Below are positions 5,729 to 58,142 of a stretch of 64,000 bases of DNA, one piece after another. Both the position numbers and the translations under genes were made by a program. A model generated the notes under the pieces. It had not been told where the DNA came from, did not search any database, and saw nothing but the letters and a program-made list of their open reading frames with translations. The stretch covers positions 124,001 to 188,000 of IMG/VR virus record IMGVR_UViG_3300031576_000001; one strand, given 5' to 3'. Within the stretch, counting starts at the first letter, position 1; every line of letters begins with the position of its first letter.

Positions 5729-6987
5729 CAAGTGCTGCCTCTGTCAAAGAGGCATATGAGCGTGAACAAGAAAAGCTACGACACGAAGGCAACCTAGAGG
5801 ATGACGACAGTTCGTTTCCTCTCCCCCAGGAGCCCGAGGTGGACCCCCGGGTCTACAAAAGTGTTGAGCCGCTCTTGTTCCGTGGCTTTCTTGCGTTGCC
5901 TGCCACGCTGGGCGATAACCTACGGGTCGTCTACAAGAGCCTCAACCACCATGAGTATGAGCGCCTACAGCTAACCCATGGGTCAAGGGACACTGACTTT
6001 TACGTAGACTTCCTGGCGCAGTCCACGTACCTCTTGGGGGGTCAGAACGTACTCTCTTGGGAGCACCGTGAGAAGGTCAAGCGGTTTTATGGGGAGGTGC
6101 CCCCTCCATTGCGTAACCGGATCTTGACCACGCTCTCTGAGTTGAACCGGCAGGCCAGTGACGGGGTGCGGCTCGTCGAGGCGTACGCCATGGAGACCCT
6201 CTCTCGGCTACGGTGGGTTCAATTGTACGGTCTGGACCTCACGTCAACGGCGGTAACGGGGGTAGAGGGCTCTTCCTTGCTGGGGTACAACTGGGGTCAG
6301 CTTCTCTGGCGGGCATTGAACCGGTACCAGGACACCCGAGAGGACATGGACAGGCATTGGGAGAACGCCAAATTCATCGGGGGGTGCTTTGCAGGCAAGG
6401 GTATCAACAAGGTCCATAACCAGGACCGGCGCCGCAAGCGCGAAGAGATTGAGAACCGTATCGCGCGGAAGGACCAAATCTTGCGTGAGGTTGTGCTACT
6501 TGAGAAGAGCCCTGAGAGGCGTGTCATGCGGGACGGGCACGTAGTCAAGTCAGCTCAAACGACCGAGGAGCTAGCCACCCAGCTTGAGCAGTCACTAAAG
6601 GGTGAGGAGGACTTTCACGACCGGGTTGTACGGGCTGTCGAAGAGTACCACGCCAAGGTCAGGGTTGACCGTGAGGCTGAGCTACAGCGGCTCTATGACG
6701 AGGCTGCCAGCAAGGCACAGGGTCAAGGGCTCACGGGCATTGTGGACCGTAAGGGTCTCTCCCGCGAAGAGGTTGAGCAGCGTATCGCCCGGACGAGGGC
6801 GATCATGGCTCAAGGAACGGCACAGAGAATGGTACGCCCCCCGCCGCCTAGTGAGAACCCCTACGAGCGTTTCCGTCAAGCGCCCGAGCAAAGCGAGCAA
6901 AGCGAGCAAAGCGAGCAAAGCGAGCAAAGCGAGCCTGGTAGCCCCAAGGGTGAGGTTCGTCCTTTGCCCCCTCTTAGGTCAAGATTA
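5725..6987 (+). CDS. putative second tail assembly chaperone
   Basis: GTGA-coupled to upstream gene; 'YKSLNHHE' resembles the motif in 4835; first in-frame TTA 6985-6987 overlaps the tape-measure ATG as TT-ATG (standard end 7011). Confidence 0.55.
6886..6934 (+). repeat. 9-bp tandem repeat GAGCAAAGC x5 (EQS repeats)
   Basis: Five perfect copies plus GAGC, directly visible. Confidence 0.95.
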
Positions 6988-9900: not shown

Positions 9901-10445
9901 CAGCGCCCGAGGCACAGAAAACTGCCGAAGAGACCGCCAAAGCCGCACAAGCCCAGGTCGCAGCTACCGAGGAGCAAACCAAGGTTCTTGACACCAAGGG
10001 CATCAAGCTCGACAAACCCTTCCTCAAGACCAAGATTGGTCCTCAAGTAGAGGAAAGTACCCTCTCGGCGCTACGTACCGCCCTCTTTGAGTTCTACGTT
10101 CTACAACATACACCGCTGGCAGACGTGGCTGAGGCGATCAAGGGGGGTCTGGACCCCAAGAGCGCAGGCGAGAAGCTAGTCGCCGGCATGAAAGAGCAAG
10201 GCAGTGCATTCAATGCTGGCGAGACCGTCAAGGCTAACGCAGCCGGAGGCACCGTCATGCGTCCCGCCCCAGGTGAAGCGTTTGCCTCCGTAGCCCCAGG
10301 GGAGACAATCGTACCCAAAGGTGGCGGCGCGGGGGGCATCACGATCAACGTCAACGTAGGGGGCGCACCGCTCGCTACGATCATCGAGGGTAAGGTCAAA
10401 GAGGGTATCGAGATTTGGCAACGCCGTGAGGCGATGAGAGCCTTA
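6987..10445 (+). CDS. tape measure protein
   Basis: ~1150 aa, Ala/Lys/Gly-rich and helical, with central hydrophobic segment; first in-frame TTA 10443-10445 followed by CCCC-GTG of next gene (standard code runs to 10733, a 284-nt overlap). Confidence 0.85.
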
Positions 10446-10449
10446 CCCC

Positions 10450-11349
10450 GTGGGAAACTTCACCCTACGCAACCCAGAGAACCTACCCAGGCTAGACGCC
10501 CCCGGGGTAGACGCGAAGTACCGTCACGGAGCCGAAGGGCTCCGAGGGGGGGTGCCCATGGTCTTTCAAGTGACCTCTCCGCTGGACGAGCGCACCCTTC
10601 TCTTGCCTCACGCCCTGGTCTTGCATATCAACCCCAAGAGCCTGGACGAGTCGTTCACCAAGAAGGTCGAGCGTATTCAGACCCGGGGCGGTTTCGTCGA
10701 GCAACACTGGTGGGAAGACCTCACCAGCATTAGCGCCTCAGCTACAACGGGTGCCTTCGTCAACATAAGGACCGGGCTAGCCTCCGTCCTACGTAGAGAG
10801 ACCATCGCCTATGACCGGTTTCAAGACCTGAGAGACCTGTACCGTAACAATGGCTCCCTCTACGCACCCAACGGGCAAATCGTGCTTCAGGGCTACATCA
10901 TGCTCCTTTACGACCGGGGCACCTACCTCGGTACGTTCAGGTCGTTTAACTTCGAGGAAACCGATGACAGCCCCTTTGCGTTCTCCCTCAATTGGGAGTT
11001 CAAGGTCGAAAAGACCATCCTCAAGGTGCCCACGGCTCTCGTAGGTCGTAACCTACCCACGCCAGCTTTGCTACAGACGAACCCTCTTGGCAAGACAGAG
11101 CCTACCCCTGACGCCATTGCTGCCAAGCTAAGAGAGTCCGCTGAGAAGGCAGCGCGCGAGACGGCAAACGAGAAGGAGCACCAACGGGAAGTGTCGGGCT
11201 ACATTGCAGAGGGCCCAGCTTTGAAAAGGGCACTTGAAACGGACGTTATCTTTGGCAGCACCACCCCGGACAGCTTTGAGGCTCGCCAGCAAGCAAGGAA
11301 CCTAGCCAAGGGTCTACCTATCACGGGGGGGTTGCGTCCCCCACGTTGA
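10450..11349 (+). CDS. putative tail tube initiator / baseplate hub-associated protein
   Basis: 'LHINPKSL...IQTRGGFVEQHW...YLGTFRSFNFEE..DSPF..S.NWEFKV' tube-like pattern; directly after tape measure. Confidence 0.6.
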   Translation: MGNFTLRNPENLPRLDAPGVDAKYRHGAEGLRGGVPMVFQVTSPLDERTLLLPHALVLHINPKSLDESFTKKVERIQTRGGFVEQHWWEDLTSISASATTGAFVNIRTGLASVLRRETIAYDRFQDLRDLYRNNGSLYAPNGQIVLQGYIMLLYDRGTYLGTFRSFNFEETDDSPFAFSLNWEFKVEKTILKVPTALVGRNLPTPALLQTNPLGKTEPTPDAIAAKLRESAEKAARETANEKEHQREVSGYIAEGPALKRALETDVIFGSTTPDSFEARQQARNLAKGLPITGGLRPPR

Positions 11350-16713: not shown

Positions 16714-18870
16714 ATGAGCACCTGGAATCAAGGCAAACCGCTGGGCGTCAACCCTTTCAGGGACTTCGTAGACCAAGACAACCCCTTCATGGGGCTACGC
16801 CTGGGTACAATCTCGCGCGTTGACCCCGTGAACATGAAGGTGGACGTGACCCTCCTTACCGGGGGCCCAAGCAAGAGGATCGAGGTCTCCCTTACCCAGG
16901 GGCTCGCCGGTCCCCGTAGCTTCCTTGGGGGCGTCCCCGAAGAGGGCTCTGTGGTGGTCTGTGGCTTCCGTCGTCAGCATAAAAACGCCTTTGACCTGCA
17001 CATTCTCGGCTACCTCTCCGTGGGTAACAAGACCGGGGCGAGGTTTGACCCCTTTGCCATCACGGACCCCGCCGAGCTTTCCCCCGAAGACAGGGAAGTC
17101 TACGACACCGTTTATGGTCCCCTTACCCGCATGAAGCGGTTGCAGCTTCGCCCAGGGGACATAGGCGCCATGAGTAGCTCTGGGTCTGAGATGACCCTCT
17201 CTCGTGATTTGCGCCTGTGTAACCGAGCGGGTGACTTGATTGAGCTTAGAGACGCCGAGAGGTCACTTGTTACCCAGGCTTTGCACCGGATAGGGTCAAC
17301 GGGCGCCGCGTACCTCTACTCTGGACCGATCCGGCGCGTTGCTTACCTTCCCCCGACCGAGATAACCAAAGAGGGCTCCCTGGCGTTTGCCAAGGGGTTT
17401 GAGGGTGCGGGCGTGTGGGAAGAGCGTGGCGCGGGGCAGGCGGGCTCTGTCTACCGCTACGCAAAAGACGGCTCACTGGCTAGCTTTCTCGTGGCGCCCT
17501 CGGTCACCACGCTGGCTAACCACCGAAGGGTCTCCTACACAACCCGCCTCTCCGGGGAGGTACCCGATGACCCGGAAGGCTCTGGGTTGGTTTTCACGGA
17601 GAACCGCACAGAGATTCGCCACCTTTCCGACCTCACGCTTGACACGCTCGACGAGATACATGGGTTCTCTTTGACCCGCCCCGTGTCCTACATTGAGCAC
17701 GTCATGGGTACTTTGGTAGGCAACGACGCGGACTCGGCTCAGGGTCAGAGGGTGTATGGCAAGGTACTCCGACCCCGCCTCTTCGCGGACTTCCTGTCTC
17801 ACACCCGGGGCGACTGGGCGCTAGAGGAGGTAGACCGCACCGGCTCTGACCAAGAGGTACTCACGGTCGCTGGCGCCCTCTTGACCAAACTGCAACCTAC
17901 CTACGGCAAGAGCCGGACCCCCTTTGCCTTCGCGGTCAACAAGCAGGGTAAGGTCTACCTCAACGTACCCAAGCCTGGCGTGGACCGTAGCAACCCAGGC
18001 GTATCCGCCGAGGTCAACCTGGAGGGTGCTCTCAAGGCGTACATCGGCGCTGCTAACCCTACTAACACCTCTCTGCACCTCACCCTTGAAGGGGGGGTCA
18101 AGGCTGACATAGGGCATAACACAGAGGGAGGTGGTCAGGGGGGGCAGGCTATCGAGGTCACCTATCACTCGGCGGTACGTCAGGCTTACCGGGGGGAGGG
18201 TAACGACGACAACCTCGCGCTGTCCACGGACGTACAGGGTAACCTGCGACTCACGACGACGGGCGAGCGTCAAGAGACCATCGGAGCCTCGTACTTGCTA
18301 AACGTCTCGGGGATGCTGCAAGCCGGCGCTGACCGGGTAAACGTCAACGCCTCCTCTGGGTACAGTGGAAATTACGGGGAGCTAAACCTGCTTGTCGCGG
18401 GCAAGAGTCAGCACAACTACGCGCTGGCGGTTCTGGAGACCATCGTGGCAGGGGGGCGCCAGACCACGGTTCTTGCTGGGGGCATGACGGAGACCATCGT
18501 GGTGGGCGCCAAGAGCTTCTCTGTCCTGGGGGGTGCCTTCCTGACCCATGTTGCCGCCGGGGCGTACACGGTCAGCGTGGGGACGGGGGCTATTACCCTG
18601 TCCACCGTGGCCGGCGCCGTGGTGGTTACCGCGGGCTCGGGGGCAATGACGCTTACCTCGGGTCTAGCGCTGGCGATAACGGCGGGTCTAGCCATGACAC
18701 TGACCGCCTCTACGCTCATCGCCCTCACGGCTCCCCAGGTTCTACTAGGCGCACCGATAGCCCCTCTGGGCGTGTGCCGCGGTGTCCCTCTTCTCCCCCC
18801 CGGGGTACCTACGCTTGACCTGATTACGGGACTGCCCTTGCCAGGCAGCCTCTTGGTTAGGTCTATTTAG
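16714..18870 (+). CDS. putative baseplate central spike (gp5/GpV/VgrG-like)
   Basis: N-terminal OB-fold-like 'GTISRVDP...GGVPEEGSVVVCGF'; C-terminal Gly/Ala/Thr/Val beta-helix-like repeats; preceded by TGGTACACT at 16696. Confidence 0.7.
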   Translation: MSTWNQGKPLGVNPFRDFVDQDNPFMGLRLGTISRVDPVNMKVDVTLLTGGPSKRIEVSLTQGLAGPRSFLGGVPEEGSVVVCGFRRQHKNAFDLHILGYLSVGNKTGARFDPFAITDPAELSPEDREVYDTVYGPLTRMKRLQLRPGDIGAMSSSGSEMTLSRDLRLCNRAGDLIELRDAERSLVTQALHRIGSTGAAYLYSGPIRRVAYLPPTEITKEGSLAFAKGFEGAGVWEERGAGQAGSVYRYAKDGSLASFLVAPSVTTLANHRRVSYTTRLSGEVPDDPEGSGLVFTENRTEIRHLSDLTLDTLDEIHGFSLTRPVSYIEHVMGTLVGNDADSAQGQRVYGKVLRPRLFADFLSHTRGDWALEEVDRTGSDQEVLTVAGALLTKLQPTYGKSRTPFAFAVNKQGKVYLNVPKPGVDRSNPGVSAEVNLEGALKAYIGAANPTNTSLHLTLEGGVKADIGHNTEGGGQGGQAIEVTYHSAVRQAYRGEGNDDNLALSTDVQGNLRLTTTGERQETIGASYLLNVSGMLQAGADRVNVNASSGYSGNYGELNLLVAGKSQHNYALAVLETIVAGGRQTTVLAGGMTETIVVGAKSFSVLGGAFLTHVAAGAYTVSVGTGAITLSTVAGAVVVTAGSGAMTLTSGLALAITAGLAMTLTASTLIALTAPQVLLGAPIAPLGVCRGVPLLPPGVPTLDLITGLPLPGSLLVRSI

Positions 18871-22057: not shown

Positions 22058-22246
22058 ATGGAAAACCTCTCAGCCTTCAAGGTGACCGTCAAGGTGGGTC
22101 GCCGCACCCTGAGCTTTATCCGGTTCGCTCCTAGCCTGGAGGCGGTTGTGGTGGACGCCCACAGGGTTCTGAGCCAGGACTTTGCCCGCACCCAAGCCAA
22201 GCTCCTCTCGGTCGAGCCCACCCTGGACCCCCGGGTGACCTCGTGA
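22058..22246 (+). CDS. hypothetical protein
   Basis: ATG directly after the promoter motif; GTGA-coupled to next gene. Confidence 0.65.
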   Translation: MENLSAFKVTVKVGRRTLSFIRFAPSLEAVVVDAHRVLSQDFARTQAKLLSVEPTLDPRVTS

Positions 22247-22647
22247 CCCCGGAGAGGGCGTTGGCGGGCTACCCCGTGACAAGGGCGCAAGTCCAGTGGG
22301 GGCTAAAGCTCTACCGGTACGTGGCGGGGTTGCGCTTCTTTGACTTCCCGATCCGGTCGTGGGGCGATGTTCACCCTCACTTGAGGGATTCACCCTGGTT
22401 GAGTAACCAAGGCGTAGCGCCGACGCGCGAAGAGGTCACGGGGGCGTTGCACAACCTCTTGGACCGAGCGATCACGCACAAAGGTGCCGCGCCGACTCCG
22501 AGGAAAGCTGAGTTTGACTACCAGGCTCAGCTTTACCGTGACCAGTGCCGGCTGCAAGACATCGCAAAGAGGGTCCGTGTGTACCAGTTCGAGACCCGCC
22601 AGTGTCGCGAGCGCTTTTCGCACCTCTTGTCCAGGTACGACGACTAA
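22243..22647 (+). CDS. hypothetical protein
   Basis: 134 aa, ends TAA 22645-22647. Confidence 0.65.
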   Translation: MTPERALAGYPVTRAQVQWGLKLYRYVAGLRFFDFPIRSWGDVHPHLRDSPWLSNQGVAPTREEVTGALHNLLDRAITHKGAAPTPRKAEFDYQAQLYRDQCRLQDIAKRVRVYQFETRQCRERFSHLLSRYDD

Positions 22648-23019
22648 GGGCTTCTCGGGTTCACCCTCGGTTTGCCCCTCTGGGTCTGCTTTGCCTTCGG
22701 CGCCCTTGGTTTGGGTTGGACGCAGCCATTTATCCAGGTTGTTACCCAACCCAAACGCCTGGCGTTCCTGGGGGTTGAGCTTCAGGTAGGCGGACTTCAG
22801 CAGTTCCTTCGCGCTCGGGTATGGGCTAAGGACACCCCGGATGATGAACCTCGGCGTACCGTCAGCCTCGCAGAAGGTGAGACTGTGCCTCTCGGCACAC
22901 CCCTCGTGGGTACTAACCGTGTACAGGTGCAGATTGATCAAAGGGCCCCCGTCGTCAAGCTGCGCCTTGTACCAGTCAGCAAAGGTGTCAGCCGTAGAGA
23001 CTTCGTGCAACTCTTTCAT
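22645..23019 (-). CDS. hypothetical protein
   Basis: ATGA-coupled to 23016-23204; first in-frame TTA is the reverse complement of the convergent gene's TAA (standard code gives a 258-nt antisense overlap). Confidence 0.6.
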
Positions 23020-23204
23020 GCACCTTCTGTATATTCGGTAAAGTCCCCAAGGGAGAGAGTGAGCCTGTTAGTCAGCTCCTTTTTCAGATCCTCCGTGATG
23101 TCTGGGATCGTCTCATCACGGAGGATGTCGATAAGAGTACACGCTTCTTCGAAGTCGAGCGTGAAGGTGATGGTTTGCGGCGTCACTGTTGTTGTCACGA
23201 TCAT
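23016..23204 (-). CDS. hypothetical acidic protein
   Basis: 62-aa ORF coupled to downstream gene. Confidence 0.6.
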   Translation of the reverse strand: MIVTTTVTPQTITFTLDFEEACTLIDILRDETIPDITEDLKKELTNRLTLSLGDFTEYTEGA

Positions 23205-23353
23205 GGTACGCGCTTACTACACCAAGCAAGAGCACCCTTGGCAAGAAAAGGAAAATAACGACCCGACCCGACAGGTGGTGCTCTAGTGAGGGTGGTGACT
23301 CTTCCGACTACACACACTGGCCCTGGCTTTACCCTTGTGCTACCAAAGCGGGA

Positions 23354-26300
23354 ATGACCTTCAGCCTCTCAGGTTACGTGCTCTTCTCACCTCGGGTAGG
23401 GGGTGGGAATGGTCCCTACACGTCAACCCCAGACGCCGTGGTCCTTGACCAAGCGGCTTTTGACGCGGCGTACCCCTCCGACGAGTCGGTACCCCGTTGT
23501 GACTACCTCGTCCTACCCCTTACCCAGGGTGACCTCCACCAAGCCCAGTTTGGGTGGGTACGCAATGACACCCCGTTGGAGCGCTTTGGTTACGACGGGC
23601 GAGCGGATCACTTCCGACCCCTCCAGGGTGGACCCCCCCAAGAGGTAGGTGTTACTGGACCCACCAGTAACACGGACAGGATGGCGGTGCGCCCCATCCC
23701 CCTCTTGCCATTGTCTCCCTCTCAGCCGGTCAGGGTATTCTTGTCGTCGGGCTTTGAGCTTACAGTGCAAACCAAGACCCTTGACGCTGACTTTACCGTG
23801 GGTGGTCCGCTCCCTGGGTTTGTCGAGGTCTCTCTAGAGACCGGCAGACTCAACTTTGCTACGGCGGACCTCACCTCCTTTAATAGGCAGGGGGTACGCT
23901 ACCAGGGGCAACGGTACGCGGGCGACAGTAACCACCCTCTTGGCTTTTACGGTCTGGACACGCTGTACCTCAACCCTCTCCCTGGGACGGGGCAGTACCC
24001 CCTGGTCAAGGTCGAGGAGGGCGTGTGGCTCACCCCCGTAGAGGTTCCTGATGAGGGTTCCTTTACAGTGCCCGCTGCTGGTACGTTCCAATGGGCTCGC
24101 GACACAGGCAAGGTAAACGTCCCCTCTGACGTGGACCTCCTCGGGCTGCGTGTCTTTTACGATGGTGTACTTCTCGCCGCGCCCCTCTCGGTACCCTCGG
24201 CTCCCCTGGGAATGGTTCAGGCGAGCAGACTGACCAGCGCCAACGTACCCCTCTCCTTGTTGGTTCCGGGTGCGGACCTTTGGCTACGGGTGGGCTCTAC
24301 GCAACTGGCGGCAGTCAAGCTGGTGGCAGCTTTTGATGGTACGGCGGGGCAGGCTGGCGTGGTTGAGGTAGTAACCAGCACGGGGCAAGCGAAGCTAAGC
24401 CAGGTAGACACCAATGCTCTCCTCGGTCAGCCCGCCACGGTCTACTCCGGTGACCTCCCCATTGAGCGTGGCGTTGCACTCAGGCTCTTCCGTAGCCCCG
24501 TCAACCTGACGGGGGGTACCGTCAAGGACGTAACGACGACGTACACGGCTGAAAACGCTACGCTGGCAGCGCCCCTCTTGGGTACGCCCAGCGTGAGTCT
24601 TCCGCAGGTTCCCATTGACGACCGGCTTTACGATGACCCCGCCTGGCTAAACCTACTTGCTCTCCCCCCGCTGTCAGACCCCTCTACGGGAAGATTGCGC
24701 GTAGAGGTTACCCAAGGGACCGGTAGCGTTACAGGGGTACAGAAACGACTTGACTCCCCCGTAGCCCCCCCGGACGCAAACAGCGCTGGCGTGGTGCTGG
24801 ACGGGGCTAGTTTGTCCCTGGCAGAGCGCAAACTCGACGTGTTGGTTACGCCCACCACGCGCACCGGAAGCGTCACATTGCCTGACCCCGCCTTGGTTAC
24901 CTCTTCGCTAGAGAGGGAAACCTTCGCCGGGTCAGGCACCTTTGTACCGATAACCGAAGGCGTACAGTACAGCCTGGACCCTTTTAGCGGGGTGGTGTCC
25001 CTTATCACCTACCCTGGCACGCCCCTCGTTACGGACAAGGCGAGCGCCTCAGTCTCGGGCTTCGTCCTCACGGACACTTCCGGTGTCAACTTCCTAACAG
25101 AGGGGGTATCTTCCGACTCCCTGGTTATCGTCCGTAGCCCGCCCGTCGTCGAGGGTGTCTATGCCGTCATCGCCGTAGGCGCTACCACGCTTACCCTTGA
25201 CGTGTCGCTGCCTCCTACCGCCCCTGTAACTTACGAGGTCCGAAGCGAGCCCGAGATCCTGAGAGATCGGGTGTGGCGCCCATTTGCCCCCCTCGACCCG
25301 TCTTTCCAGCTAGAGCGGTACACCCCTCTAGGTACGGTGCAGAACGCGCCTCCGCTAACCACGGACACAGGGAATGCTCCAAGGTTGCGGTTCAAGATTG
25401 GCAACGCGCTAACGCCCCTTGTCACGGTCAAGCCGGATGACGCCAGCCTCACGCTAGCCGGCGCACTACCCTCCCTCTCCGTGGAGATTAGCCAAGAGAC
25501 AGGGCACCTTCGGTTCAGTGCGCTCGACCTGGGTTTCCCTCTAGCGCAAGCCGTAACCTTGAGAGACGGTGCAGATTACAAAGTCTCACCGGACCTTGGG
25601 TTTGTCTCCCTCGCCCGACCCTTTCTCTCCGGGGAGTCGGCGCTGGTGACGTACCGTCCCACGCTGGACGCTCCGACCGTGACGGAGCCGGTAGGCTTTC
25701 AGATCAGCCGAGAGGCGTTTACGGCGGTAGCCCCGACGACCACGGTACTTTTCAACCAAGCTGGGCTACCGGTAGCCCCTGCTCCGCCCCCTCTCACCCT
25801 AAGAGGGTCACGACCCCAGGTTGAAGGGGTTACGGTGGTAACGAACCTCGCCAATGGGACCGTGACCTTCTTGCCGTCCGCTCAGGTGACCAAGCACTTC
25901 CCCGCTGGTCCCTTGGAAATAGGGGAGACTGTCTACATAACGTATTTTGTGACGGTGGCGGCGGGGGGCGAAACCTCGTTTACCGTGTTGCAAGGCACCA
26001 TTGCTACCCAGCCGGTCACCCTCTCTCAGGGGGACGTGACCATCACCTTCCCGGGTGACGTGACGCTCACGCTGGCACCCTCCGTGGCTTTGCGAGTCAG
26101 TGTCTCTGACGTGTACCTCGTCCAAAGCTCGGCTTACAACGGCAGCGTGACAACGGCGACCCTGAGTACGCCTCTTCGGCAAAGCGTTACCGCCCCTCCC
26201 CTTGAGGTCACCTCCGGCCCCCTCTCCTCGTACTTCCTCCCTGACCTTGGCTTTTACGAGGCTTTGCCCAGGGGAGCCAAAGAGGCTCGGCTTGTCGGAG

Positions 26301-29146
26301 ACAGGGTAAAAAGCTACCCCCAAGGCACCCTTGTCCTTTGGGATGGTGAGCCGTACCACGTAGAGGGGGTCAAGCGAGACGGGGGGGTGACGGTGCTCTC
26401 CCTTGGCGCGGCAACCGACCGGGAGTACGCCGGGGTTTCACTGGCGCGCTCTATCCGACCCGTGCTCCCCGGGGGTGCTGCTGTCAGTACCCAGACGCCC
26501 CTCCTTGACGGTGTGGACCTCCTCTACCGCAAGGTGCCAGGTCAGGTAGGCTCCTTGCTAGAGGGGGTTACCGTGACAACCTCGGGTCAAGTGACGGGGC
26601 TACCCCCTCTGGGTGACAGCGAAGAGCAAGGGGTGGCTTACCGTGGGTACGGCAGCCTAGAGGCCGGGCAGAGTCTACGGGCGAGCTACACCGTTAAGAG
26701 GGTGCCTACGGCGAGCAATGGGTACGCCGGGCAAGTCTTGGTCGCCACGTACACCACATGGTCCCCCGATAGCTTTTACTTCCGAGTTGAGAAGCTGTCC
26801 GATGTGCGCGCAGAGGCAGCCCGGCGCCAGCAAGCCGAGGTTTCAGCGAGTCTACCCTCCTCGGGTCCAAGGCTGAGTAATGACCCTGGGTTGACACTAG
26901 CCGACAGGGGGCGAGCCTCGGTCTTCTACGAAGAGAGCGTGTACCGCAACGATGACGTGGCTTTCCGCTCCTTCCTGCTCTTTACCAATGACCTCGTTAC
27001 CCTCTTGGAGAACGCCAGGCTGGATGCTGTAGGGGTCAACGTGGGGGGGCGTGACGGTCAGCTACGGTTCAACGGCTCGCTAACGAACCCAGCGGTCGTG
27101 ACGGTCAGCGTAGCCCTCAATCAGATTGACGACCTGTACCAAGTAAGCCCTGGACCCTACGTGGTGACAGGTCCACCCTTTGTTGTTACGCCGCAGTACA
27201 CCTATGCCCCCGCGTGGACGCCTGCCCCGCAAAGCCGGTTCTTCAAAGCCAAGAGGCGTCCCTTTGGAGTAGCCTCTGTGGCTGCACTACCCGCGCAGGG
27301 TGACGTGGTTCTTGACCTGGGGGTCCGTAACTTGACCCAAGTGTCTTACGTGAGGGACCGGCAACCCTGGGCGCTTGTCACAGCGCCCGCAGCTTCGGGT
27401 GCCTTTACCGTGTCCGTGGATGACGCTGACGGCGACGCCTACCTCGTCCGCCCCAACTTCGGGGTGGGTAATCAAGTAGACCTCCTACGCCCCGATGGGT
27501 CCGTGGTTGGAGGTAGCCCTTACGAGATAGCCTCCCTCACGCCAACCTCCCTCACGTTCACGGTGGCTCTGACAGACAACGTACCCAGGGGGGCAACGGC
27601 GGTACGCTCTTTGGACGACCTGGCGTACTATCAAGTCGGAAAAGACCTTGGGCTAGACGCAACGGGTGGGCTTCTCACTTACATTGTGCCCTTTCCTCCG
27701 CTGGACGGTTCGGTCCCGCTTGTGCCGGCGGCGCTAGAGGTACTCCCCCCCAACCCGGGGCAGCCTCTTAGCACAGAGGTTTTCCTGTCCCCCGCAGCCA
27801 CCACGCCAGACCGCCCCCCGGTGCTGGACGGTCTAGACCTGGACGACGACGGCGAGGTTAGTTTTCCCTTGCAAAGCCCCACGGACGTTTGCGAGCAAAA
27901 CAGCTTGGGGGTGGGCAGGTTGCCTGACGTGTTTGCTCGGTATGCTGCCCTTGTGAGCGTGACGACACCCACGGAGACCTTCACGGCGAATTTGACGGCG
28001 CTCAACGTGATTACCCGGACAAGCGGGAACTTCGGAATCCTGCCGCTACCCGGTCAACTGGTCCGAATCCTCTCCGGGGTACACGCGGGCACCGCCTTTG
28101 TGCGGGTTGCCTCTGCAACCCTAACGGCGATCACGGTGGACGTACCCTACGGCAGCCTCGACACTGGCTTTACTGCGGTTGTAGGGGTCTCTTTGTTCGC
28201 CTTGACCGGCGCAGGCACCGTCATTGCTTTTGGTCTCACGTTGGAGGATGCCGTAGCTACCTTTCAGACCAACGGGGTTCTACCTGGGTACACCGTGGTC
28301 AATACGGTTACACTGGAGAGAAGCCAGGTCACGGCTGTACCGGACGAGACGCACCTGACGCTGGCTTCCCCGTTGACGCTGGGTGCTATCAATTACAGGG
28401 TAGAGAACCCGTTGTGCTCCTTCTCTGCGCTAACCACGCAGTCTACGGCACTCGACAAGCTGAGAGAGGTTGTGGCGACCAATGACCTCCCTGCCCTCCC
28501 CAGTGAGATAAGGGCGCTAGAGAGGGCGCTGGACCTCATATTCACGGACAGGGCAGGTAACCCGGAGTCTGTCACTGTTACGTTGCCCTCCACGGTAACC
28601 GGTCCCGTCTGGTCTGGCGTGACGCCAGGCGACACCGTGTTCTTCCGAGAGGGTGCAAACAGGGGCGTCTACACGGTGGCTTCCGTGGTGGGCACGGTTA
28701 TCACGGTTTCCGGGGCTCTTTCGCTAGCGGGCTCTGACTTCGTTCGGGTGGTCCAGCTAGAGGGCGTGAGCCAAGAGGGCGTAGTTACGCTGGCTAGCCT
28801 CCTCTTTGAAGTAGACGACTACAACTCGGCATTGATCGCGCTGTTGGTCCAACTAGCGAGCTTTCCAGTGCTTTCTGCATCCTACGCCAACAGGCTGGTC
28901 AGCTCAGAGCTGACCCCTTTGCTTGCGGTTCTTGCTGTGCGTGACCCGGCAGCTTGGGAAACTAGGGTCTTTTCCTTTCTCCGTGGGGGAGAGCGTTTGT
29001 ACGACAAGAGGTTTGCGTGGATAGACGGCAGATTGAACAAGTTGACGGGGACGCTGGCTCGGATAGCGCAGGCAAGGCAACGCCGGCTACAGAACCAGGC
29101 CAGCCTGACCAACCAATTGATACGCCTCCTCAGCCTCAGTGGGTTA
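23354..29146 (+). CDS. very large beta-rich virion structural protein (baseplate/tail associated)
   Basis: ATG at 23354 after TGTGCTACC; ~1930 aa of repeated beta domains with helical C-terminus; first in-frame TTA 29144-29146 (standard end 29254). Confidence 0.7.
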
Positions 29147-41302: not shown

Positions 41303-43909
41303 ATGACATTCAAAGAATACGGTCCTGGGGTGTCTGGTTACCTCGACCCCGAGGAAAGAGCATTCCTGACAGGTGTATTTCAGTCCGCCAAGCCAGTGCT
41401 TGACACAGAGCTGAACCTGGCTTCAGACCTTGAGGACCAGATTAGCCAGGGAGTCCCTCTCAGTGGTACACCCTCTGGGTGGCTCACGCGAGACGCTATC
41501 GACCAGCCTGATAACTTCCCCATCTTTCAGGCTGTAGGCGCGTCAAATACCCTGCAAGTCTCAGGTCCGCTACTAGCTAACGTGAATGGTTGGCTTGTCC
41601 GTGTCACCAACACGGGTATCGCCCCTGGTAACCAGCTAGACCTTGGGGCGGGACCGGCGGGTGCGGCTTCCAAGAGGGTGGACTTTGTACTTCTAGAGGT
41701 TTGGCTAAGGCTTCTCTCGGCGGCTCCGTCTACGGTAGGCAAGAGCCCAGCGGCTCGAATCTGGCGTAACGGTAACGTCAAAGTGTCTCCGGCTGACGAT
41801 CTGGTAGTCAACTTCCCTGATGACATACTCGACGTGAATGTGGGCTCCGAGACGACCAAGAGGGTACAGGTACAATACCGTCTCAGGGTGGTTCAGGGGG
41901 TGGACCTCTTTAGTTACCCGGACGGGATGAGTGACCCCCTCATTGTAGCCCGCACGGTGCCCCCCAACGCGGCGACCCCAGACGGGGCAGTGCCCCCGGC
42001 GCTCTACCCTTACCAGAACCAGGACGCTAACGGGGACACTGGGCTCTGGCGGGCTGGCCTTGGGGACGCAACGTCGGCTTCCGACCTGGGGACCGTGGAT
42101 GGGTTTATGTACGCCATCCCCTTTGCGGCTGTTTTCCGTAGAAACACAACCGCTTTTGCCAAGAACAGTAACCATAATGGGGGTATACTCTCCCCCGGAC
42201 CTAGCGACCGCCCCGATGGTCTCTTTCACAACGTCATTGTCCTAGACGACGTGGCGGACCTACGGCGCCTTGTAGCCTCGGAGTCGTGGTCCCTTCCCGA
42301 AGTTCTACAGCGCAACCTTCGGCTCATGCTGGACAACCAACTGAGAACCGAGTGGGAAGAGACCCCCAACGGGGGCGGGGTGTGGGGTCACAGTAATCTC
42401 TGGGCAGACGAGATTGGGCCCGTAGACACGCCTGGCGCTACACTCATCGGTGATTTTGACGCAGTGCTCCGTAGGTTCAGTGACCGGGCTGTCCTAGAGA
42501 TAGCCACGCTGAGGATCACTGGACCCTTCGTGGACGGGCAAGTCATCACCCTCAACCCCACCGTGCTCCCTGTCTACCCTTACGCGGCTTTCAACTGGGC
42601 GTCCTTTGCACCCTCTGAGGTACGCTGGCTCGACGTGGTAAGCGCCCGCTTTGACGGAGAGGGTGTTGCCGGGGCTACCCACGTTGACGCCCCTATCGTG
42701 ACCATGACCGGCTTTGGTACGGACCCGGTAGGTCCAGTGACACTCACGCTGGGCACGGTCTCGACCATACCCATCACGACGGAGGCGCTCTACGTTGACC
42801 TCCTGATAGCATATCCCAACTTTAGGGGTGCTCAAGGCAGTGGCTTGACCCGTACCCCAGTAGCTAACTACCCCTTGGACGTTACCGGGGCGAGCGGGGC
42901 GGTACAGATCAACAACCCGGTGCAACTACCGGCTGCCGCACCCATCCTCTTTAGCCAGCTAAACGTGGGGTCAGACTTCTCACACCGAGAGGTACGGCTA
43001 CAATACGAAACCCTCTCTCAGGTCGTGCTGGTCAATGCCCCGGCTGCCGTGGGTGTCTCGACGATTGACCTCCCCGAGAGGGCACTAGCTATAACGCTCA
43101 TTGAGCGTAGTCCTTTCCCTGGTCCGTTTGCACCCATCGTGGGGGGGTTTACAATAGACGCCTCGGGGCGCGTAGTCACGCTGACCAACCCGGCAGACTT
43201 TACAACCACCGTGTTGGATCGATGGCGCGTGACCCTGCAAGCGGTGCGCCCTCTACCGCAAAACGGCGAGCAACTGACGCTGTACTACCCCGCGAGGGCA
43301 CCCCAGGCGGTACGAAGTGCCTTGCTGGGCGTCGCCAAGGTTTTTCACCCCAAGCTCGTTGGGGACACCTTGCTAGCCATCACTACGGGTAGCGGTAGCC
43401 AGGGAGAGGGTTACCCATTCCCTTACGCTTACGTGCAAACAGGGGGTGTTTACCCCACGTCAATTGGTACGTTTGGCGGTGAGCATGAGCTAGACGGTCC
43501 CGCGACTCTCTCTGTGTCGGACTTCAACGCCACCACAGGCTGGCTCAAACTTCACCCCTACGTGGGGTACGAGCCCACTGGACCTGTCACCTTTACCAGG
43601 GCGCCCACCGACGCTGACATAGAGGGACGTAGCTTCTTTACGGGCGTACCACCTGGGGACTACATACCCAACACGTTTGCACAATTGCTGAGCGACCCCT
43701 CGCGTCACAAAAACGTACTACCCCTCCTCTTGGAGCTACCGTTTGCCAGTCCGCCTCTGGGCTCGCAGGGTGCCTTGTACTTCGGAATCCTCATGAGGTG
43801 GGCCATGGACGCTCAAAACTCGGTCGTTATGAACCCCGACTTGACACTCAACACCACCACACTGTCCATCTTCCGTACCAAGGGTCTCTTGACCGGAAGG
43901 AAGGCGTTA
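41303..43909 (+). CDS. tail fibre/baseplate-attached protein, paralog of 53823
   Basis: N-terminal 'VFQSAKPVLDTELN' baseplate-docking-type motif; first in-frame TTA 43907-43909 overlaps next ATG as TT-ATG (standard end 43993). Confidence 0.7.
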
Positions 43910-46096: not shown

Positions 46097-49000
46097 ATGA
46101 GCGCCACACACACACCGACTACGACCGAGACCAATCTGACGGTGCCCGAGAGGGAGGCTTTGCGTCATGCCGACCTCTTCTCTCAGGAAAAAGCTCTCAC
46201 GCTGGGCGGCAACGAACCCTTTACCACGGGGGTTAGCCAGACCTTTGCAGACCATCTTTCCCCTACGCCCACCGAAGAACCGGGTAAGGGGTTGGGGACG
46301 TTTACCAAGGTGAATCTGCCCGCTGAGGTAGCCTCTTGGTACGGACCCACGCAGCCAACCCAAGGCACAGAGGGTCGGGCGCTCAACATCTCGACCTGGC
46401 AAGACCTTACCCAGACTTTTGGGCTTTCAGTCTTGCCAGGGGACGTACTCTTGGTAAAAGCCAAGAGCGGGTCTACGACGGACAACGCTTACGCGGTGGG
46501 CACTGTGTCTGCACTGACAGGCACAACCCTCACGCTGACCAACATTGTCAACCCCTCCAACGTGGGCTCCGAGGATGAGCTAGACCCCGCGCCCCTAGAG
46601 GTAGGCTGGAGCTACATCGTCATCCGTCCTAACGCCAAGAGGCTCTTTGCGCTTCCTGGGTCTGGACCCTTGGGGAGTGAGCAAGCCTTTCTCTTCGTGG
46701 ACAGCTCGGCGCCTCACACGGTCGCAGCCCCCAGGCTCGACGGTATCGAGGGCGCCCGTATCACCAAGATCGTACCCCCTCAGCTTGGTACGGGCGACAG
46801 GGCGGACTCGGTTTACGACTTCGGCGCACGCACGGGGCTAGACAAGCTGGGGTACAGGGTCGTCTTGTACCCTGATAACGGGGCAGGCGCACCAGACCTT
46901 ACCAAGCCGATCACGTCCACCACGCCGGTTCTGGACAGCACCAAGCCGGCGGCGGACCAGAGGATGACGGTGGACTACCACGCTGGCGTGGTACGGTTTG
47001 CCATCCCTCCGGTGACGGGTAGTGAGGTCAAACCCAGTGCCCTCTGCGTGGAACCTGCCACAGGGAGGCTGCGCCTCTATGCTGTCTACTGGGCTTCGCA
47101 ACCCACGGTAGCTCCTTACGTAGAGGGCGCTCCCAAGGAGCTTTACCACGTAAGGTCGGATGAGTACGACGCTAAGGCGGCGGGCTTTGTCCGGTACGAC
47201 GCTGCCCGCGAGGCTTGGTTGCTAGGGGCTACTGACACCGGAGAGGAACTTTACGTCCAGGCGCTCACAGGGACGGGGGTTACGTACTTTGGGGTCCAAG
47301 ACAGCACTACACCGCTCTCGACGGAGAGATACTTTGCGTACACTCAGGGCGATAACGCTTGGAAGTTCAAGAGGCAGCCGCTAACTGAGCCGGTGACAGA
47401 CCCCGCTACGTCCATGGACCTTGTGGTCGCGGACAAGACGGCGTTTACGGTGGGCGCGGGCGCTAACCCCCCGCAGAACCCCGGGGGGGACTACAACCCC
47501 TCTGGGCTGGTAGGCTACCGAGACCCCACGACCAAGCTGCAAGAGGCAGTCAAGGCTGCGATTCTTGACGGTTACGGCGAGGTTCATCTTCGGAGAGGGG
47601 AGTACCGTTTGACCAGCACGGTCACGGTGCCCCCTGGCGTGAAGATCACTGGCGAGGGTGCGGCTACCAGGGTGGTCTCTAAACCGGATGGTGCTGGCGA
47701 CGCTCACGCCCTCTTCAAGTTTGGCGCAAACACGCCTTGGGGGGTGTGGGACGCTGATTACCCTCTCTCAGGGAGCTACACCCCTCCTAGCGTAACTCTT
47801 GACCCTACGGCAAGGATTGAGGGGTATGATATTGTTTGGAACCCTGTACGCCGTGTATGGGGTGTAACGTGGGCGGACAGTGTAGCTAACGAGGTTTACT
47901 TCCGAGAGGTGGACCTACAGGGTCAGTGGTCCTCTCAGACTCTCACGGTAGCGACGCTCCCCCTCTTTACTCGCTTCACGGCGCACGCTCTAGCTCCGCA
48001 CCATACCACGGGCCACTACCCCAGGATGGTTCACGTAGAGGGTACGGATGAGTACGTCGTGGTTTACGTGCGCGACACAGGTGCCGGGCCAGAGTCCGTT
48101 ATCGAGACGGTAAAACGGTTGGCTGGTGCTTTCAGTTTGAAGTTCCCGTCCACCACAGTTACGGGGGACTACGCAAATAACAGTACGCCAAGTCTAGCCT
48201 CTTCGGGCTCCGAGGTACGTCTGGCGTTCTCCTCGTTTGCTTCCGATTACAGCACGGTGAGTGTACAGACGGCGAGCTATGATGTAGGCACAGGTCTTCT
48301 TACACCGGTAGACACCACGGGGGACCGTGACGCAAATCGCATCATCACGTCCGTGGACATCGCGGCTAAGAACGACAGCACCTACGCCGTGGTCTGGTCC
48401 GAGAGACAAGGACTCCTTGTTACGTCGGTCTGTGGTACAACGGTAAGCTCAAATGTGGTTACCGTTGGTGGGATTATTGTGCTCCTACTGCTCCCTGGGA
48501 TGCGCTTTCTCTGTCACGACAACTTGGCCTCCGTGGATAACGGTAGGAGCGGGGTCATCGTAGGCGTGGCGGGGCTGAACGTCACGGTGGCTTTTGATGA
48601 TGGTGACCAATTCTTTCACTCGAATACCGCGGGTTTCAACTTCTCAGCGGCGCCCCTGTCCACGATATACGCAGCGACTTCAACCGATATGGCAGGGGGG
48701 AGCACGCTCCTTGTCGTGGTTGCTGGTGGTGAAATTACTTCTTTCTACAGTAGAGACGAGCGCGAGCCTGACTTTGTTAGGATTTGTCGTGGGGGTGACG
48801 GCTGGCTCATTGTGTACCAACTGTTTGACACCGTGGCTCGTCTAGCGGGCGACACCATGCGGAACCTTGACGACGGTTTCAACACAGTGTTTTACGACAG
48901 TAGCGCCACCTACCCCCCGGACGGTGACGTACCGTTGGCCAGCCTCTCGGTACACAGAGAGTACCTCTCTACGTGCTTTGCTTTGCTGGGGGACAACTTT

Positions 49001-52000
49001 ACACTCACGGGGCCAACACCTTCCGACAGAACAGGTCTCAACCCCACCAGCCTCTCAGACTTCCCTGCGATGGGTGCGGACACACACCGTACCGGGCGAG
49101 TGCTAGGGGGTCGTAAGCCTATCCGGGTTCCTTGGGCAAACAGCGTTCTCAACACGTCGCGCCCTGAGCTAGAGGTCTCTGCCAGGAATTACTGCCACGC
49201 TTGGAACCTTGTAGACGACAAAGTACCCTCTTTGTTGCCCGACGTGACGTGGACCGGAGAGGATTGGATGGTGGTCTCTCCGACCATGGCGGGCATTTGG
49301 TCGGACACGGGGGTAATCAGTAATGACGCGGGCACCGAGATCCTGACTGACGAGAGCTTCATCTTTGGTACAGGGTCAAGCCCAACGTCCAACAATGATG
49401 GGTCTTTTCTACCCCTCACGGTTACACCCTTCTCTGACGCGGTTTACTTTCCAGTCACGGGTGAGACTGTTTTGATTACGGGGGTGCGCAGCGAGCACGT
49501 AATTGAACTCGCTTCTATTCCCGTTGCGCCCGTGGGTATCCCTGGGAGCCAGAAAGAGTGGTGTTTGGTTAACGGTAGCACCACACTAGGACTATCGGGG
49601 GGAATGCCTAACCTGGGTTTCCGGGTCTCTACCAAGGGTGAGGTACTCACTACCTCTTCGTACCTCACCTTCGCCATCCCCGAATCCGTTTCGACTTCTC
49701 GCCCGCGTAGCCAAGAGGTTCTCAACCGTAGCCTCTGGGGTGACGCTACCTTTTCAACCCGAAAGTACGGGGACACCAGCCTCTCTTGGAATGACCAAGT
49801 AAGCACGTCCAAGCTCGCCGCGGACCTCACGGTACAAGGTGTCACTTTGGGCGCCCCTAAGCCTACCTCGGAGCAAGCCCGGCTAGAGAGCCCCCTCTGT
49901 GCCATTGCGTGGGGTGAGAACACCTACGGACTGGTAGACCGGATCACGGGGGGTATCGGTGGGGGTCGCGTCAACAAGCTCAACTTCTACCGCCAGAGCT
50001 TCGGACGGTGGAACTCCTCTCTGGAGAGCATGACCCTTACCGGGGGCGCGGCTACCCTGAGCCAAGAGTCCTTCGAGCACGTCTACACCCGTCACGGGTG
50101 GGTCACGTCAGCGCAAGTGGGGTGGTCCACGGACGGCTACCGCACCTTCTTCCCCCATTTCACAGCCCGCTTCTTGAAGGGGCTCATGAACACGGGCAGC
50201 CTCTTTGACCTTGCGTCCGGTGACCCTGCTCGCGATACAGATTGGTTTGTTGACCTCTCAGCGATGGTTGCTGACCAAGAGGGTGGTCATGGGGTCAGGG
50301 TCCGGGGCACACCGTTTGCGCTAACACCCACGAGAGACCCCACGGACAACTTCTTGGGGATTGCCAACGTGCCAGGGGTCGGCTTGACCAACCTGAACAC
50401 GATGCAACCCAAGTCTCTTTGGAATGGTCGTGACTGGGTAGTCTTCTTCCCGGGGGTTTTGGTCAACGCGCAGCCCGCGAACGCCATTTCGATTGAGAAG
50501 ATGATGCACCACCGTGGGGTCATATCCATGGTGGTCTTCCCCGGAGAGGGTCTGGAAATGGACGGGGCGTTGGTAGGTGACGAGCTTACCAACCCGGCGG
50601 CACTGGCGACCAACCTACGGTCAGCCAAGGTGGTAGCCACGGGGCACATAACCTGCGGGGCGTACAACCTGAGCATGAACCGAGAGGTAGTCTTGCTTGA
50701 CGTAGCCTACTCGGGCAAGACGTACTGCGTTGTGTGGTCGATGGGGCTACAGACCACGGACCCTTCTACAGTGAGCACGGCGTTCACGGGTGCCAATGGT
50801 GGTAACCTCATAGGGTACACTCTATTTCACGACAGCACCGGAACCACGACAGCCTTTGGTAACGTGGTGTCTGGTAGCATTTCCGCACCAGACACCTTTG
50901 ACCCGGGAGGAGGGGTGACACACCTCCTAGAGCTTGACTCTACCATCCCGGGCTTGACGGTAGACAACCAGCAACGCAAGGCGAGGTTCTTGTCACCCAA
51001 GATTATTTGGGATGGTAAGCAATTTCAAATCTTCGTGGTTCACCGTGACGACAACTACGGCGCGCTGGCTACAGACCACGGTTTCATGAAACAGGTTGCA
51101 GTGGCAGAGGATGGCAGTGGGCACACATTGCAAATGCGGAATGCTGCAAATCGCTATGTCCCAGTGGCGGGATACGGCACGGCAAGGGTGCTAGGGCAGT
51201 TCACCATTGACCCCTACTTGAAGCCCGCGGGTGCGAAGCTGGTGTTGAGGCTCAACCTCACGACTTCAGGGCCATTCGGAGAGTATGGTGGTGTTGTGCT
51301 GCCTGGGGACACTTTGGTCATAACCAAAGTAACGGATTTGCTGGGCACTTTGGAGGAATTCAAGCTCGCTGGCGTTTACACGGTAACGGATTACGATGCA
51401 CAGAACGGTTATGTTTCCCTTTCCGCTGACTTCGATAGCACGCTAGCAGGGCCGTCTTACCTGGCATACGGCTATCTTCTCTCTGGGGGTATGGCCGCCA
51501 AGAGGGATGCTCCCTCCGGGGCGTTGACTAACGCCGGTCAGAACTACCTACAGACGGTGGTTTCCACCGAGCCCACTTCCACGTTGCAAAACATGGTCCG
51601 TATCTGGGACACCGCCTACAACGAAGAGAATGGGGAGTATACCCTCTTGGTGGAAGCCGAGGGCGACGGGGGCTTTTTCCTCGGGCTTCTAGCCTTCTCA
51701 CGGTCTACAGGGTCCGTTGTCCGTGAAGTCGAGCTGGCAGGTATAGTTGGACCCGTTACCTACCTTGACGCCTCTCTAGCTTGGAACGGCGACCGTTACT
51801 TCGTCGCCGCTGCCAAGAAAGACGCCATCGCAGGGGAGTCTGTGGACACCTACCTCGTCAGCCGTGACTTCATGGTCGAAGAGGCTAATGCACCGGCCTA
51901 CGTGCCCACTGACTTCGTGGGTAACACGGGGCGGAAGATGCCTGGACCTGGGTACGGGGCGTACTCCGCAGCTTCCAACCTGCCGCTGGCTAGTTTCCGG

Positions 52001-53188
52001 GGCGTCAAGGTCAAGTGGAACCCTGTCCTTGGACGGTGGGGTCTGGCGGTCTCTCTTGTGTGGTCCGGTCACGGGGCGGCTCAACTTTACCAGACCGGGT
52101 GGAATGTCAGGTCTCTTCTCGACGAGCCGGCAACAACCCTTGGGGTGGGTGTCCGGGTAGGTCGCGACTTCGGTTTGACTGTGGGAACTGCGTACCGCCA
52201 GCCTGGAATGCGCTTCTTGACGCAGAGGCTCACCCCCCTCTTTGGTCTCACGGCGCCAGACTTTGCATCTAGCTTGCCCCAGGTTATCGCGGATACCGTA
52301 ACCTTGGTCAACTCCTCTCAAAACGCCAAGGTGGGCGACCTCTTTGCAGTTGCAGGGAGAGGGCCAGGGGGCACAGATATTCGCAGAACCGCCACCCTTT
52401 TCGGGGGCGCGGCGCTGGACAATGCCAGCGTGGACATGCCGTGGAATGACGCAACGAACGCCATTGATGTGGCAGTGGGTGATTATGACGCTGTGCCCCC
52501 GGACGGAACCTTTACTGTTGTGGGACGCCTCGCTCAGTACAATTTGCTGTTCAACGAAGGCGCTGGCGTTACCTATACCGCGACAAGTCTTACGGATACT
52601 GATGTCTTCCCAGGGTTCATTACCATGGGAGTGCAACCAGGGGACCGTGTTTACGTGGGCGGTAACGCTTTGGTCTACGTGCTGTCCGTGGCGCCCACCG
52701 TGCTCACCACAACACCCTTTGGGGTGCTCCCCCCCGCAGGCACGCACTACACGGTCACACGTCCCTCCTCTTACCTCTACAACCTGAAGTCCTCGCTAAG
52801 CACAATCTTGCTCACGGGTGACGTGGATGCCGCTACCCAGCGCACCCCCCTCTTGGAGTCTACCGGGGGACACACCCTGGAATTCCTACCCAGAGAGGAC
52901 GTGTTCCTGATTACGCTTGGGTACGGCACGCCTTGTGTAGAGGTAGACGGAGCCGAAGGCGTCGCTCTAAGTAACCTCACCCTCGGGGGTAGCCAGGACA
53001 TCACGGTCAAAGTAGCTCAACACCCCTGGCTTGCTCAGTCCGGGCTTGCCGTGGGCTGCGTTGACTCCGGCTCCCCCCTCTACCCCAAGAGACCTTCTCT
53101 GGCTTTCAGGTTCCCCGTGCCTAGAGAAGCCCCCGTGACGCTAAGCAATGTGGTAAGCCGCACCAAAATGCGGTACAAGGGAGTCTTA
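46097..53188 (+). CDS. very large tailspike/fibre-like protein
   Basis: 'VHLRRGEYRLTSTVTVPPGVKITGEG' beta-helix entry motif and many 'W.G..Y.V.W' propeller-like repeats; first in-frame TTA 53186-53188 follows ~2360 TTA-free codons. Confidence 0.7.
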
Positions 53189-56800: not shown

Positions 56801-58142
56801 AAACTTTGAGGGTCCGTTCTTCTTCATCACGAAGGACGATGACGGTGACAGCACGTTCGTACTCAACGCCAACGCGCTGGACCTCAGCAAGTCTACCCTC
56901 GTACCCATTCCCACCTTTACCGCAGGACGGTACGTTATCGAGGCGAGCATCTTCGGTTTTGACCGTAACTCGTTCAACGTAAACTCAGATTTCCGGCTTG
57001 TCCTCTCGCGAAACCGCACGCTGGCGAACAGCTCTGGACCGCTACGCAGCGCTAATCTGGGCGTTACCCTCCCTGGGGTGACGGCGATACTCCCTGGACC
57101 TTTGGCTGCCTCTGACGGCGTGGTCATCAATTACAGTCGAGCGGCTTACCAGGGCGATGCTTGGGGTAGTGAGACGACTTACACGGACACTGCGCAGCGC
57201 ATGGGACCGCTAAGTTCCGTTGATGCATACCAGCTAAGCGCCACACAACTTGACCAGAACGCCCTGACGCGACCTTACCAGAAGCCCCTAGAGGTTCTCG
57301 CCTCTGTGTCATTCCAGACCACGGCTGGCACGGGTAGGTTGGGGATGGAGGCATCGTCGGGTCTAAATGTGCTGAACATTGGGTACGAAAATCCCGCGGT
57401 CTACCCACCACCCTCCCCCGTGGCGGCCCGTCCGAGGAGCATTCTTGGCGCGCTGGTGGGCATCACTGAGTCCTACGGTACAGACCTGTCAGCGTGTACG
57501 TCCAGGCTACCTCTTGGGGGTCTCTTCCGCGATAAAGACTTCCGGGGTGAGCCGGTAGCCACGGGTAAGTCAGCCTTCGTCGTGGAGCCTGGCGAAACGA
57601 ACCTTGGTCTAGCCTCACTGTCCCCAAGAGGGCGCCAAGAGGTAAGGGAGCTACCTGTGACCCCCGTAACGTCTTGCAGCGGAGAGGCTGGTGACGTGAT
57701 TGTCCACGTTGACGGCGAGCAGTCAAGCTACGTGCCCCTTGTGAACTATCGCACCACGCGGGGGGGCTCTTTGTACAGCGCGACGTTGCCCCGTCCGGGT
57801 GGCGAGGTCTCTGCCAGGATGAGCCAGATCACAACGCCCGTAGCCAACCACCCCAACGTGCTCTCTGTCAAAGCCCTGCTTGTTCGCAACGCTTTGACTC
57901 AGAACGGGTTCGGTGAGGTCTCTTCGGGTGGGGAGCTTATGATGCTCATTGCTACCGAGGTTCACCGGCTGAACGTCTCTGGAATCCTGACCGCTACAGG
58001 GGGCGTGACTATCTCGACCAATGGCACCAAAGAGGGTTACAGCGCCGCTGATCTATACCGGATCGAGGGTCGCCCGCTAGAGTCAGACCACGTAGGGCTC
58101 AGGGTCAACCCCTTTGGTATTACCCTGACAAGGCGTGCATTA
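53823..58142 (+). CDS. large tail fibre/baseplate-attached protein, paralog of 41303
   Basis: 'VVWQADKPPLDSELN' N-terminus; first in-frame TTA 58140-58142 (standard end 58148). Confidence 0.7.

Follow-up and report, generated by a model that had tools for sequence, protein, structure and literature searches.

The region 22243-23204 lies in a window of 64,000 nucleotides that is bases 124001-188000 of a single 322,633-bp contig, and contains three genes, one on the + strand and two on the minus strand. The + gene (22243-22647, 134 aa) is a conserved gene of unknown function and the last gene of a + strand run. It has a GTG start overlapping the TGA of the previous gene, and ends ...RFSHLLSRYDD at a TAA at 22645-22647. 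The convergent minus-strand ORF starts with an ATG at 23019, and its first and only in-frame TTA, at codon 125, is 22647-22645, the same three bases. Under the standard bacterial code (table 11) this ORF runs on to 22390 and encodes 209 aa, but with TTA read as a stop it encodes 124 aa (22645-23019, minus strand) and ends ...GEPEKP. It is the second gene of a two-gene minus-strand cassette. The other gene of the cassette (23016-23204, minus strand) encodes a 62-aa acidic protein, and its TGA overlaps the ATG of the 124-aa gene (ATGA). The initial annotation described the shared triplet with exact coordinates, predicted the 124-aa product, and proposed that TTA is a stop codon in this genome and that the shared triplet argues against a TAA-to-TTA read error. 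The analysis described here confirms the observation and supports both points of the interpretation.

The contig is IMG/VR/JGI record Ga0247727_10000022 from a cave metagenome, and is linear, with 59% GC and an estimated completeness of about 68% by CheckV. It belongs to a huge phage (G000) with giant ORFs, a cluster of about 40 tRNAs at 21-31 kb, a tmRNA, and almost no PHROG or Pfam matches in its structural genes. Ten large proteins had no PHROG hit, and a 1167-aa structural protein had no relatives in IMG/VR. No DNA match for the region of the shared triplet was found in the phage collection, and none of the five genes around it matched a Pfam or PHROG family. No relatives of the 124-aa protein were found in IMG/VR or in an index of 5.8 billion proteins, and an exhaustive HMMER search gave only three weak, repeat-driven hits, none of which supports residues 125-209 of the longer product. 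A single-sequence AlphaFold model of the 209-aa product had a pLDDT of 35 and was uninformative.

The + gene, in contrast, has homologues and is conserved to its last residue. P0123 (121 aa) shares the C-terminus ...RVRVYQFET..RFSHLLSRYDD and ends at the same residue with TAA. P0122 (44% identity, 99% coverage, called as 173 aa) has ...RFSHLLASRED followed by TTA at exactly that position (nt 897-899 of L104, a relative), with the ATG of the next gene 19 nt downstream. The overlap region 22390-22647 is therefore the most conserved part of a real + strand gene, and the 258 nt that the 209-aa reading would need are its antisense. A codon model favours + strand sense across the overlap, and the 85-codon minus-strand extension (22390-22644) fits the antisense-in-register class better than the sense class. 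In L104 the + gene is followed directly by the ortholog of the giant gene, and the two minus-strand genes and their 150-nt divergent intergenic region (22645-23354) are absent. They are thus a small cassette of unknown function inserted in G000, with no room for a terminator between the convergent genes.

Among 48 adjacent convergent gene pairs in the genome, four share a TAA/TTA triplet exactly, and no other gap value occurs more than twice. This is more sharing than chance would give. However, once TTA is a stop, such sharing is an expected by-product of tight gene packing, as any TAA stop is automatically a barrier in one of the three frames of the opposite strand. The shared triplet is a consequence of the code and of this packing, not a separate device.

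TTA is the rarest in-frame codon in the phage genome, at 1.0 per 1000 (0.24 per 1000 in ORF interiors), while the next rarest codon is at 3 per 1000 and the TTA triplet occurs at 5.6 per 1000 over all frames. Of the 68 in-frame TTAs in ORFs of at least 250 aa, 47 (69%) lie within the last 40 codons, compared to 7% expected, and no other codon exceeds 12%. A six-frame codon model was used to ask whether coding continues in frame after a triplet that follows 45 clearly coding codons. Coding continued in 5 of 108 cases for TTA (5%), 7 of 68 for TAA (10%), 4 of 69 for TAG (6%) and 7 of 166 for TGA (4%), but in 54-73% of cases for eight sense codons (228-1120 cases each). The five TTA exceptions are interpreted as same-frame neighbouring genes. 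The distance to the next in-frame stop is the same after all four triplets, with a median of 11-17 codons. A positional control in which TAG, TAA or TGA was read as sense was confounded by antisense shadow ORFs. In 80 unrelated ThyX-bearing phage loci there was no clustering of TTA at ORF ends, and the GC-matched loci use TTA inside ORFs at 1.5-3.4 per 1000. Two loci (L070 and L020) looked marginally like TTA-stop users, though on counts too small to say.

Calling genes with four stops gave 370 genes, of which 154 end in TGA, 105 (about 28%) in TTA, 61 in TAA and 50 in TAG, and reduced the number of doubly covered bases from 4680 to 3150. TTA stops occur on both strands and in nearly all 20-kb bins (16 of 17), with no sign of restriction to one part of the genome such as late genes, and TTA is the commonest stop of genes of at least 400 aa. 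Many of these TTAs are followed directly by a start codon: there are eight TTATG junctions, and TTA gcc ATG or TTA ccc ATG occur inside apparent mega-ORFs. Within the window, on the + strand, the TTA at 6985-6987 ends a 420-aa gene and overlaps the ATG of the next gene by one base (TTATG), and the TTA at 43907-43909 ends an 868-aa gene and forms another TTATG junction. The TTA at 10443-10445 ends a 1152-aa gene, and coding potential then shifts to another frame. The next gene starts at 10450, while the standard code would give a 284-nt overlap. The TTA at 53186-53188 splits a 2570-aa standard-code ORF into a 2363-aa gene and a same-frame downstream gene (TTA gcc ATG). The giant gene ends with the TTA at 29144-29146 (about 1930 aa counted from the likely start at 23354), and the TTA at 58140-58142 ends a 1439-aa gene. 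The two giant genes (23189-29146, about 1930 aa, and 46097-53188, 2363 aa) have no Pfam match, but the first is conserved at its N-terminus in L104.

Homology gives independent evidence. A standard-code ORF of 490 aa (L010:4664-6136) carries a ThyX domain and an unrelated CxxCxxCC domain, separated by TTA followed by GTG. All 119 best ThyX homologues are 273-352 aa long, contain ThyX alone, and end within about 10 residues of the TTA. In a syntenic relative, L018 (Logan SRR29476925, 35.7 kb, 21 orthologs), ThyX and the CxxCxxCC protein are separate genes, and ThyX ends with TAG where G000 has TTA. Two other ortholog pairs end with TTA at the same position in both phages, and orthologs ending at TAG and TGA are found in both. 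No alignment between the two crosses a TTA, apart from four residues at the ThyX-CxxCxxCC junction itself. In another comparison with L018, that of a 751-aa protein with a eukaryotic-type topoisomerase IB catalytic core (91 bits; L010:10269-12521, genome 230269-232524), the homology runs past an in-frame TTA and a TGA for about 10 codons in L018, which could be a broken gene or a chance extension.

The translation apparatus of the phage is consistent with this reading. Of the 39 tRNAs found, those for leucine have anticodons GAG, UAG, CAG and CAA, and none has UAA. The phage encodes its own tmRNA (L002:10256-10633, genome 30256-30633; Rfam 52.8 bits), whose canonical-looking tag ANDNVEAAPLALAA is followed by TTA where tags normally have TAA. 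Table 11 would add 28 more residues and destroy the C-terminal ALAA. ARAGORN does not report this tmRNA, possibly because the tag has no canonical stop. A well-folded tRNA with anticodon CUA, of the amber suppressor type, is also present (L014:7803-7877, minus strand, genome 307803-307877), but TAG nevertheless behaves as an ordinary stop in G000.

Scanning for tags of the form ANDN...ALAA followed by TTA found three more phage records. L134/G035 (20 kb) carries a tmRNA at 60 bits with the tag ANDNGVAPFALAA followed by TTA, which ARAGORN also does not report. G032 (435,218 bp, 65% GC, direct terminal repeats, 100% complete by CheckV) and its near-copy G033 carry the tag ANDNFAASPALAA followed by TTA. 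In G032, 54 of 55 in-frame TTAs end coding, as judged by a GC-position test. The 44 tRNAs in its first 400 kb do not include anticodon UAA, though tRNA(CUA) is present in this phage too, and the genome has no RF-1 domain.

A first tmRNA pattern scan of bacterial genomes found nothing. A looser scan of one genome per prokaryote species gave five hits, about the number expected by chance, but two are real tmRNAs. These are in the MAGs 'Polyangiaceae bacterium SJ398' (G001, 6.6 Mb) and 'Myxococcota bacterium KLAP97' (G002, 5.8 Mb), both with 72-75% GC. Each has a single tmRNA (142-148 bits) with the tag ANDNAVPFALAA followed by TTA, while every clearly read tag among the 23 related genomes with a tmRNA ends ...ALAA directly followed by TAA or TGA (a few tags were mis-parsed). 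In 490 kb of the two MAGs, 12 of 13 in-frame TTAs end the coding frame, compared to 5 of 5 for TAA, 66 of 70 for TAG and 217 of 227 for TGA, while coding continues after sense codons in 50-80% of cases. Two of these TTAs, within about 100 kb of one contig, are again TTA/TAA triplets shared by convergent genes. One G001 gene ends ...MFGAPDAET-TTA, and its orthologs in G002 and other related genomes end 7-29 residues beyond the aligned core with TAG or TGA. Its table-11 open frame is 1253 aa, against about 700 aa. In a BLAST search with the tRNA of a relative, tRNA-Leu(UAA) was recovered from 13 related genomes but not from G001, where the best hit is tRNA-Leu(CAA), nor from G002, although both MAGs are incomplete. 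The one exception to termination is an in-frame TTA at a conserved Phe of metH in G002 (L308, G002:C260, about 17598-17600; SNVSCS[TTA]RGN, against SNVSFSFRGN in G001). It is the only TTA found inside a conserved motif and lies next to a second substitution of a conserved Phe, so it is likely an assembly error or a decaying gene.

We conclude with high confidence, though from sequence inference on metagenomic assemblies alone, that in the translation system of this phage UUA is a termination codon alongside UAA, UAG and UGA, and that the minus-strand gene starting at 23019 ends as a 124-aa protein. We infer that the decoding is supplied by the host, as the complete phage G032, with the same code, carries no class-I release factor. 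No RF gene was found in G000 either. The host is probably a very GC-rich Myxococcota lineage represented by G001 and G002, but this assignment is a hypothesis resting only on the shared rare code and Myxococcota-like tags. The tmRNA sequences are not especially close (46-52% identity) and do not tie the phage to these two MAGs specifically. It is likely, at a lower level of confidence than for the phage, that this bacterial lineage itself has reassigned UUA from leucine to stop. In the inferred history, TTA had almost vanished from the lineage and tRNA-Leu(UAA) was lost, and RF1 or RF2 then came to accept UUA, a codon-capture route. On this view the phage, being less GC-rich, uses the captured codon for about 28% of its genes.

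No factor that reads UUA was identified. G001 and G002 have only RF1, RF2 and ArfB, like their relatives, and an extra release-factor paralogue was sought and not found. Their RF1 keeps the canonical PxT motif (PAT...HTS), with two lineage-specific substitutions, one of them next to the helix that reads U1. Their RF2 (L161:1015-2007, minus strand, in G001; L164 in G002) has SPY in place of the SPF codon-recognition motif, RRQTAF in place of RRHTSF, and six lineage-specific substitutions. However, RRQTAF is common in the group and SPY also occurs in two relatives, G026, whose tag ends normally in TAA, and G022, whose tag was mis-parsed. The motifs alone therefore do not explain UUA reading.

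Other explanations are much less likely. If the code were standard and TTA simply a very rare Leu codon, the minus gene would make the 209-aa protein, which is in the databases as P0001 from Prodigal-type gene calling, and whose frame is indeed open under table 11. However, open antisense frames are expected here, because the reverse complements of the stops are rare or absent codons, and the terminal clustering of TTA, the conservation of the + gene across the overlap, the absence of homologues supporting the tail, the lengths of the ThyX homologues and the tmRNA tag all contradict this reading, which we consider very improbable. A sequencing or assembly artefact, or a base modification turning TAA into TTA, is more improbable still. 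Nothing was found in its favour, and it was considered only because the contig is a metagenome assembly. The sequence is identical in an independent Logan assembly, the same code signature appears in contigs and MAGs from other samples and studies, TTA stops occur on both strands, and at the shared triplet a TAA-to-TTA error on the minus strand would remove the TAA of the + gene, which P0123 shares.

A less remote alternative, though also unlikely, is that TTA is unassigned rather than a true stop, with ribosomes stalling for want of a tRNA and a release factor and being released by tmRNA, ArfB or peptidyl-tRNA drop-off. The lack of a cognate tRNA, the failure to pin down an altered or extra release factor, the tmRNAs carried by the phages and the ArfB of the candidate host are in keeping with this. 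Yet the tag reading frame itself ends in TTA in three phages and two bacteria, so that rescue by tmRNA would stall again, and tmRNA would tag about 28% of phage proteins for degradation, including the largest structural ones. The TTATG and short-spacer junctions also look like ordinary termination-reinitiation coupling.

The codon table is identical to NCBI translation table 23, known only from the mitochondrion of Thraustochytrium, in which the literature confirms TTA as a stop. That code belongs to a small protist organelle genome, while here it is found in phages of 0.3-0.44 Mb and apparently in 6-Mb free-living bacteria with a bacterial RF1/RF2 system, so the origin must be independent. 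In green-algal organelles, for example with UCA in Sphaeropleales mitochondria (table 22), a different sense codon was captured as a terminator after it fell out of use (PMC6821328, PMC12574857), again in small genomes with few genes. The stop-codon-recoded phages (Lak, crAss-like and huge phages), in which TAG or TGA is read as an amino acid, are also large phages with many tRNAs, suppressor tRNAs and translation genes, whose genes are mis-called under table 11 (PMC7162821), but there the change runs in the opposite direction. Coding density under table 11 is not reduced here (about 91% of bases lie in table-11 ORFs), so such genomes escape the usual low-density screen. In GC-rich bacteria such as Streptomyces (with bldA) and Micrococcus luteus, codons may become rare or unassigned under GC pressure, presumably the first step here, but TTA, where present, would encode Leu inside genes rather than mark gene ends and terminate the tmRNA tag.

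In the papers and preprints searched, including a 2026 preprint on new prokaryotic codes, there was no report of a TTA/UUA stop in phages or bacteria. The natural code variants reported so far in these groups change a stop into a sense codon or one sense codon into another, and sense-to-stop changes are known only from organelles. A UUA stop in bacteria and their phages would be the first outside organelles, and would show that bacterial RF1/RF2 termination can evolve to accept a codon with U in the second position, a natural example of codon capture creating a new terminator. About 28% of the genes of such phages would be mis-annotated in public databases as too long or fused, because standard gene callers merely lengthen or fuse the ORFs. 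The TTA-terminated tmRNA tag was a handy marker for finding more cases, and the code offers a testable handle on phage-host matching.

Some other features of the phage genome are of potential interest. A 354-aa protein (L006:9366-10427, genome 109366-110430) matches Pfam Volactin, an archaeal actin-like family, at 207 bits over the full profile, and is an actin homologue in a huge phage. A 905-aa ORF (L005:3670-6384, genome 83670-86387) combines a LAGLIDADG endonuclease domain with a DNA methylase domain, and may be an intein or a homing-endonuclease insertion. Among the TTA-ending genes of G000, the base after the terminating TTA is G in 47% of cases, compared to 20% for all TTA triplets, which looks like a tetranucleotide context preference (TTAG) of the kind known for canonical stops.
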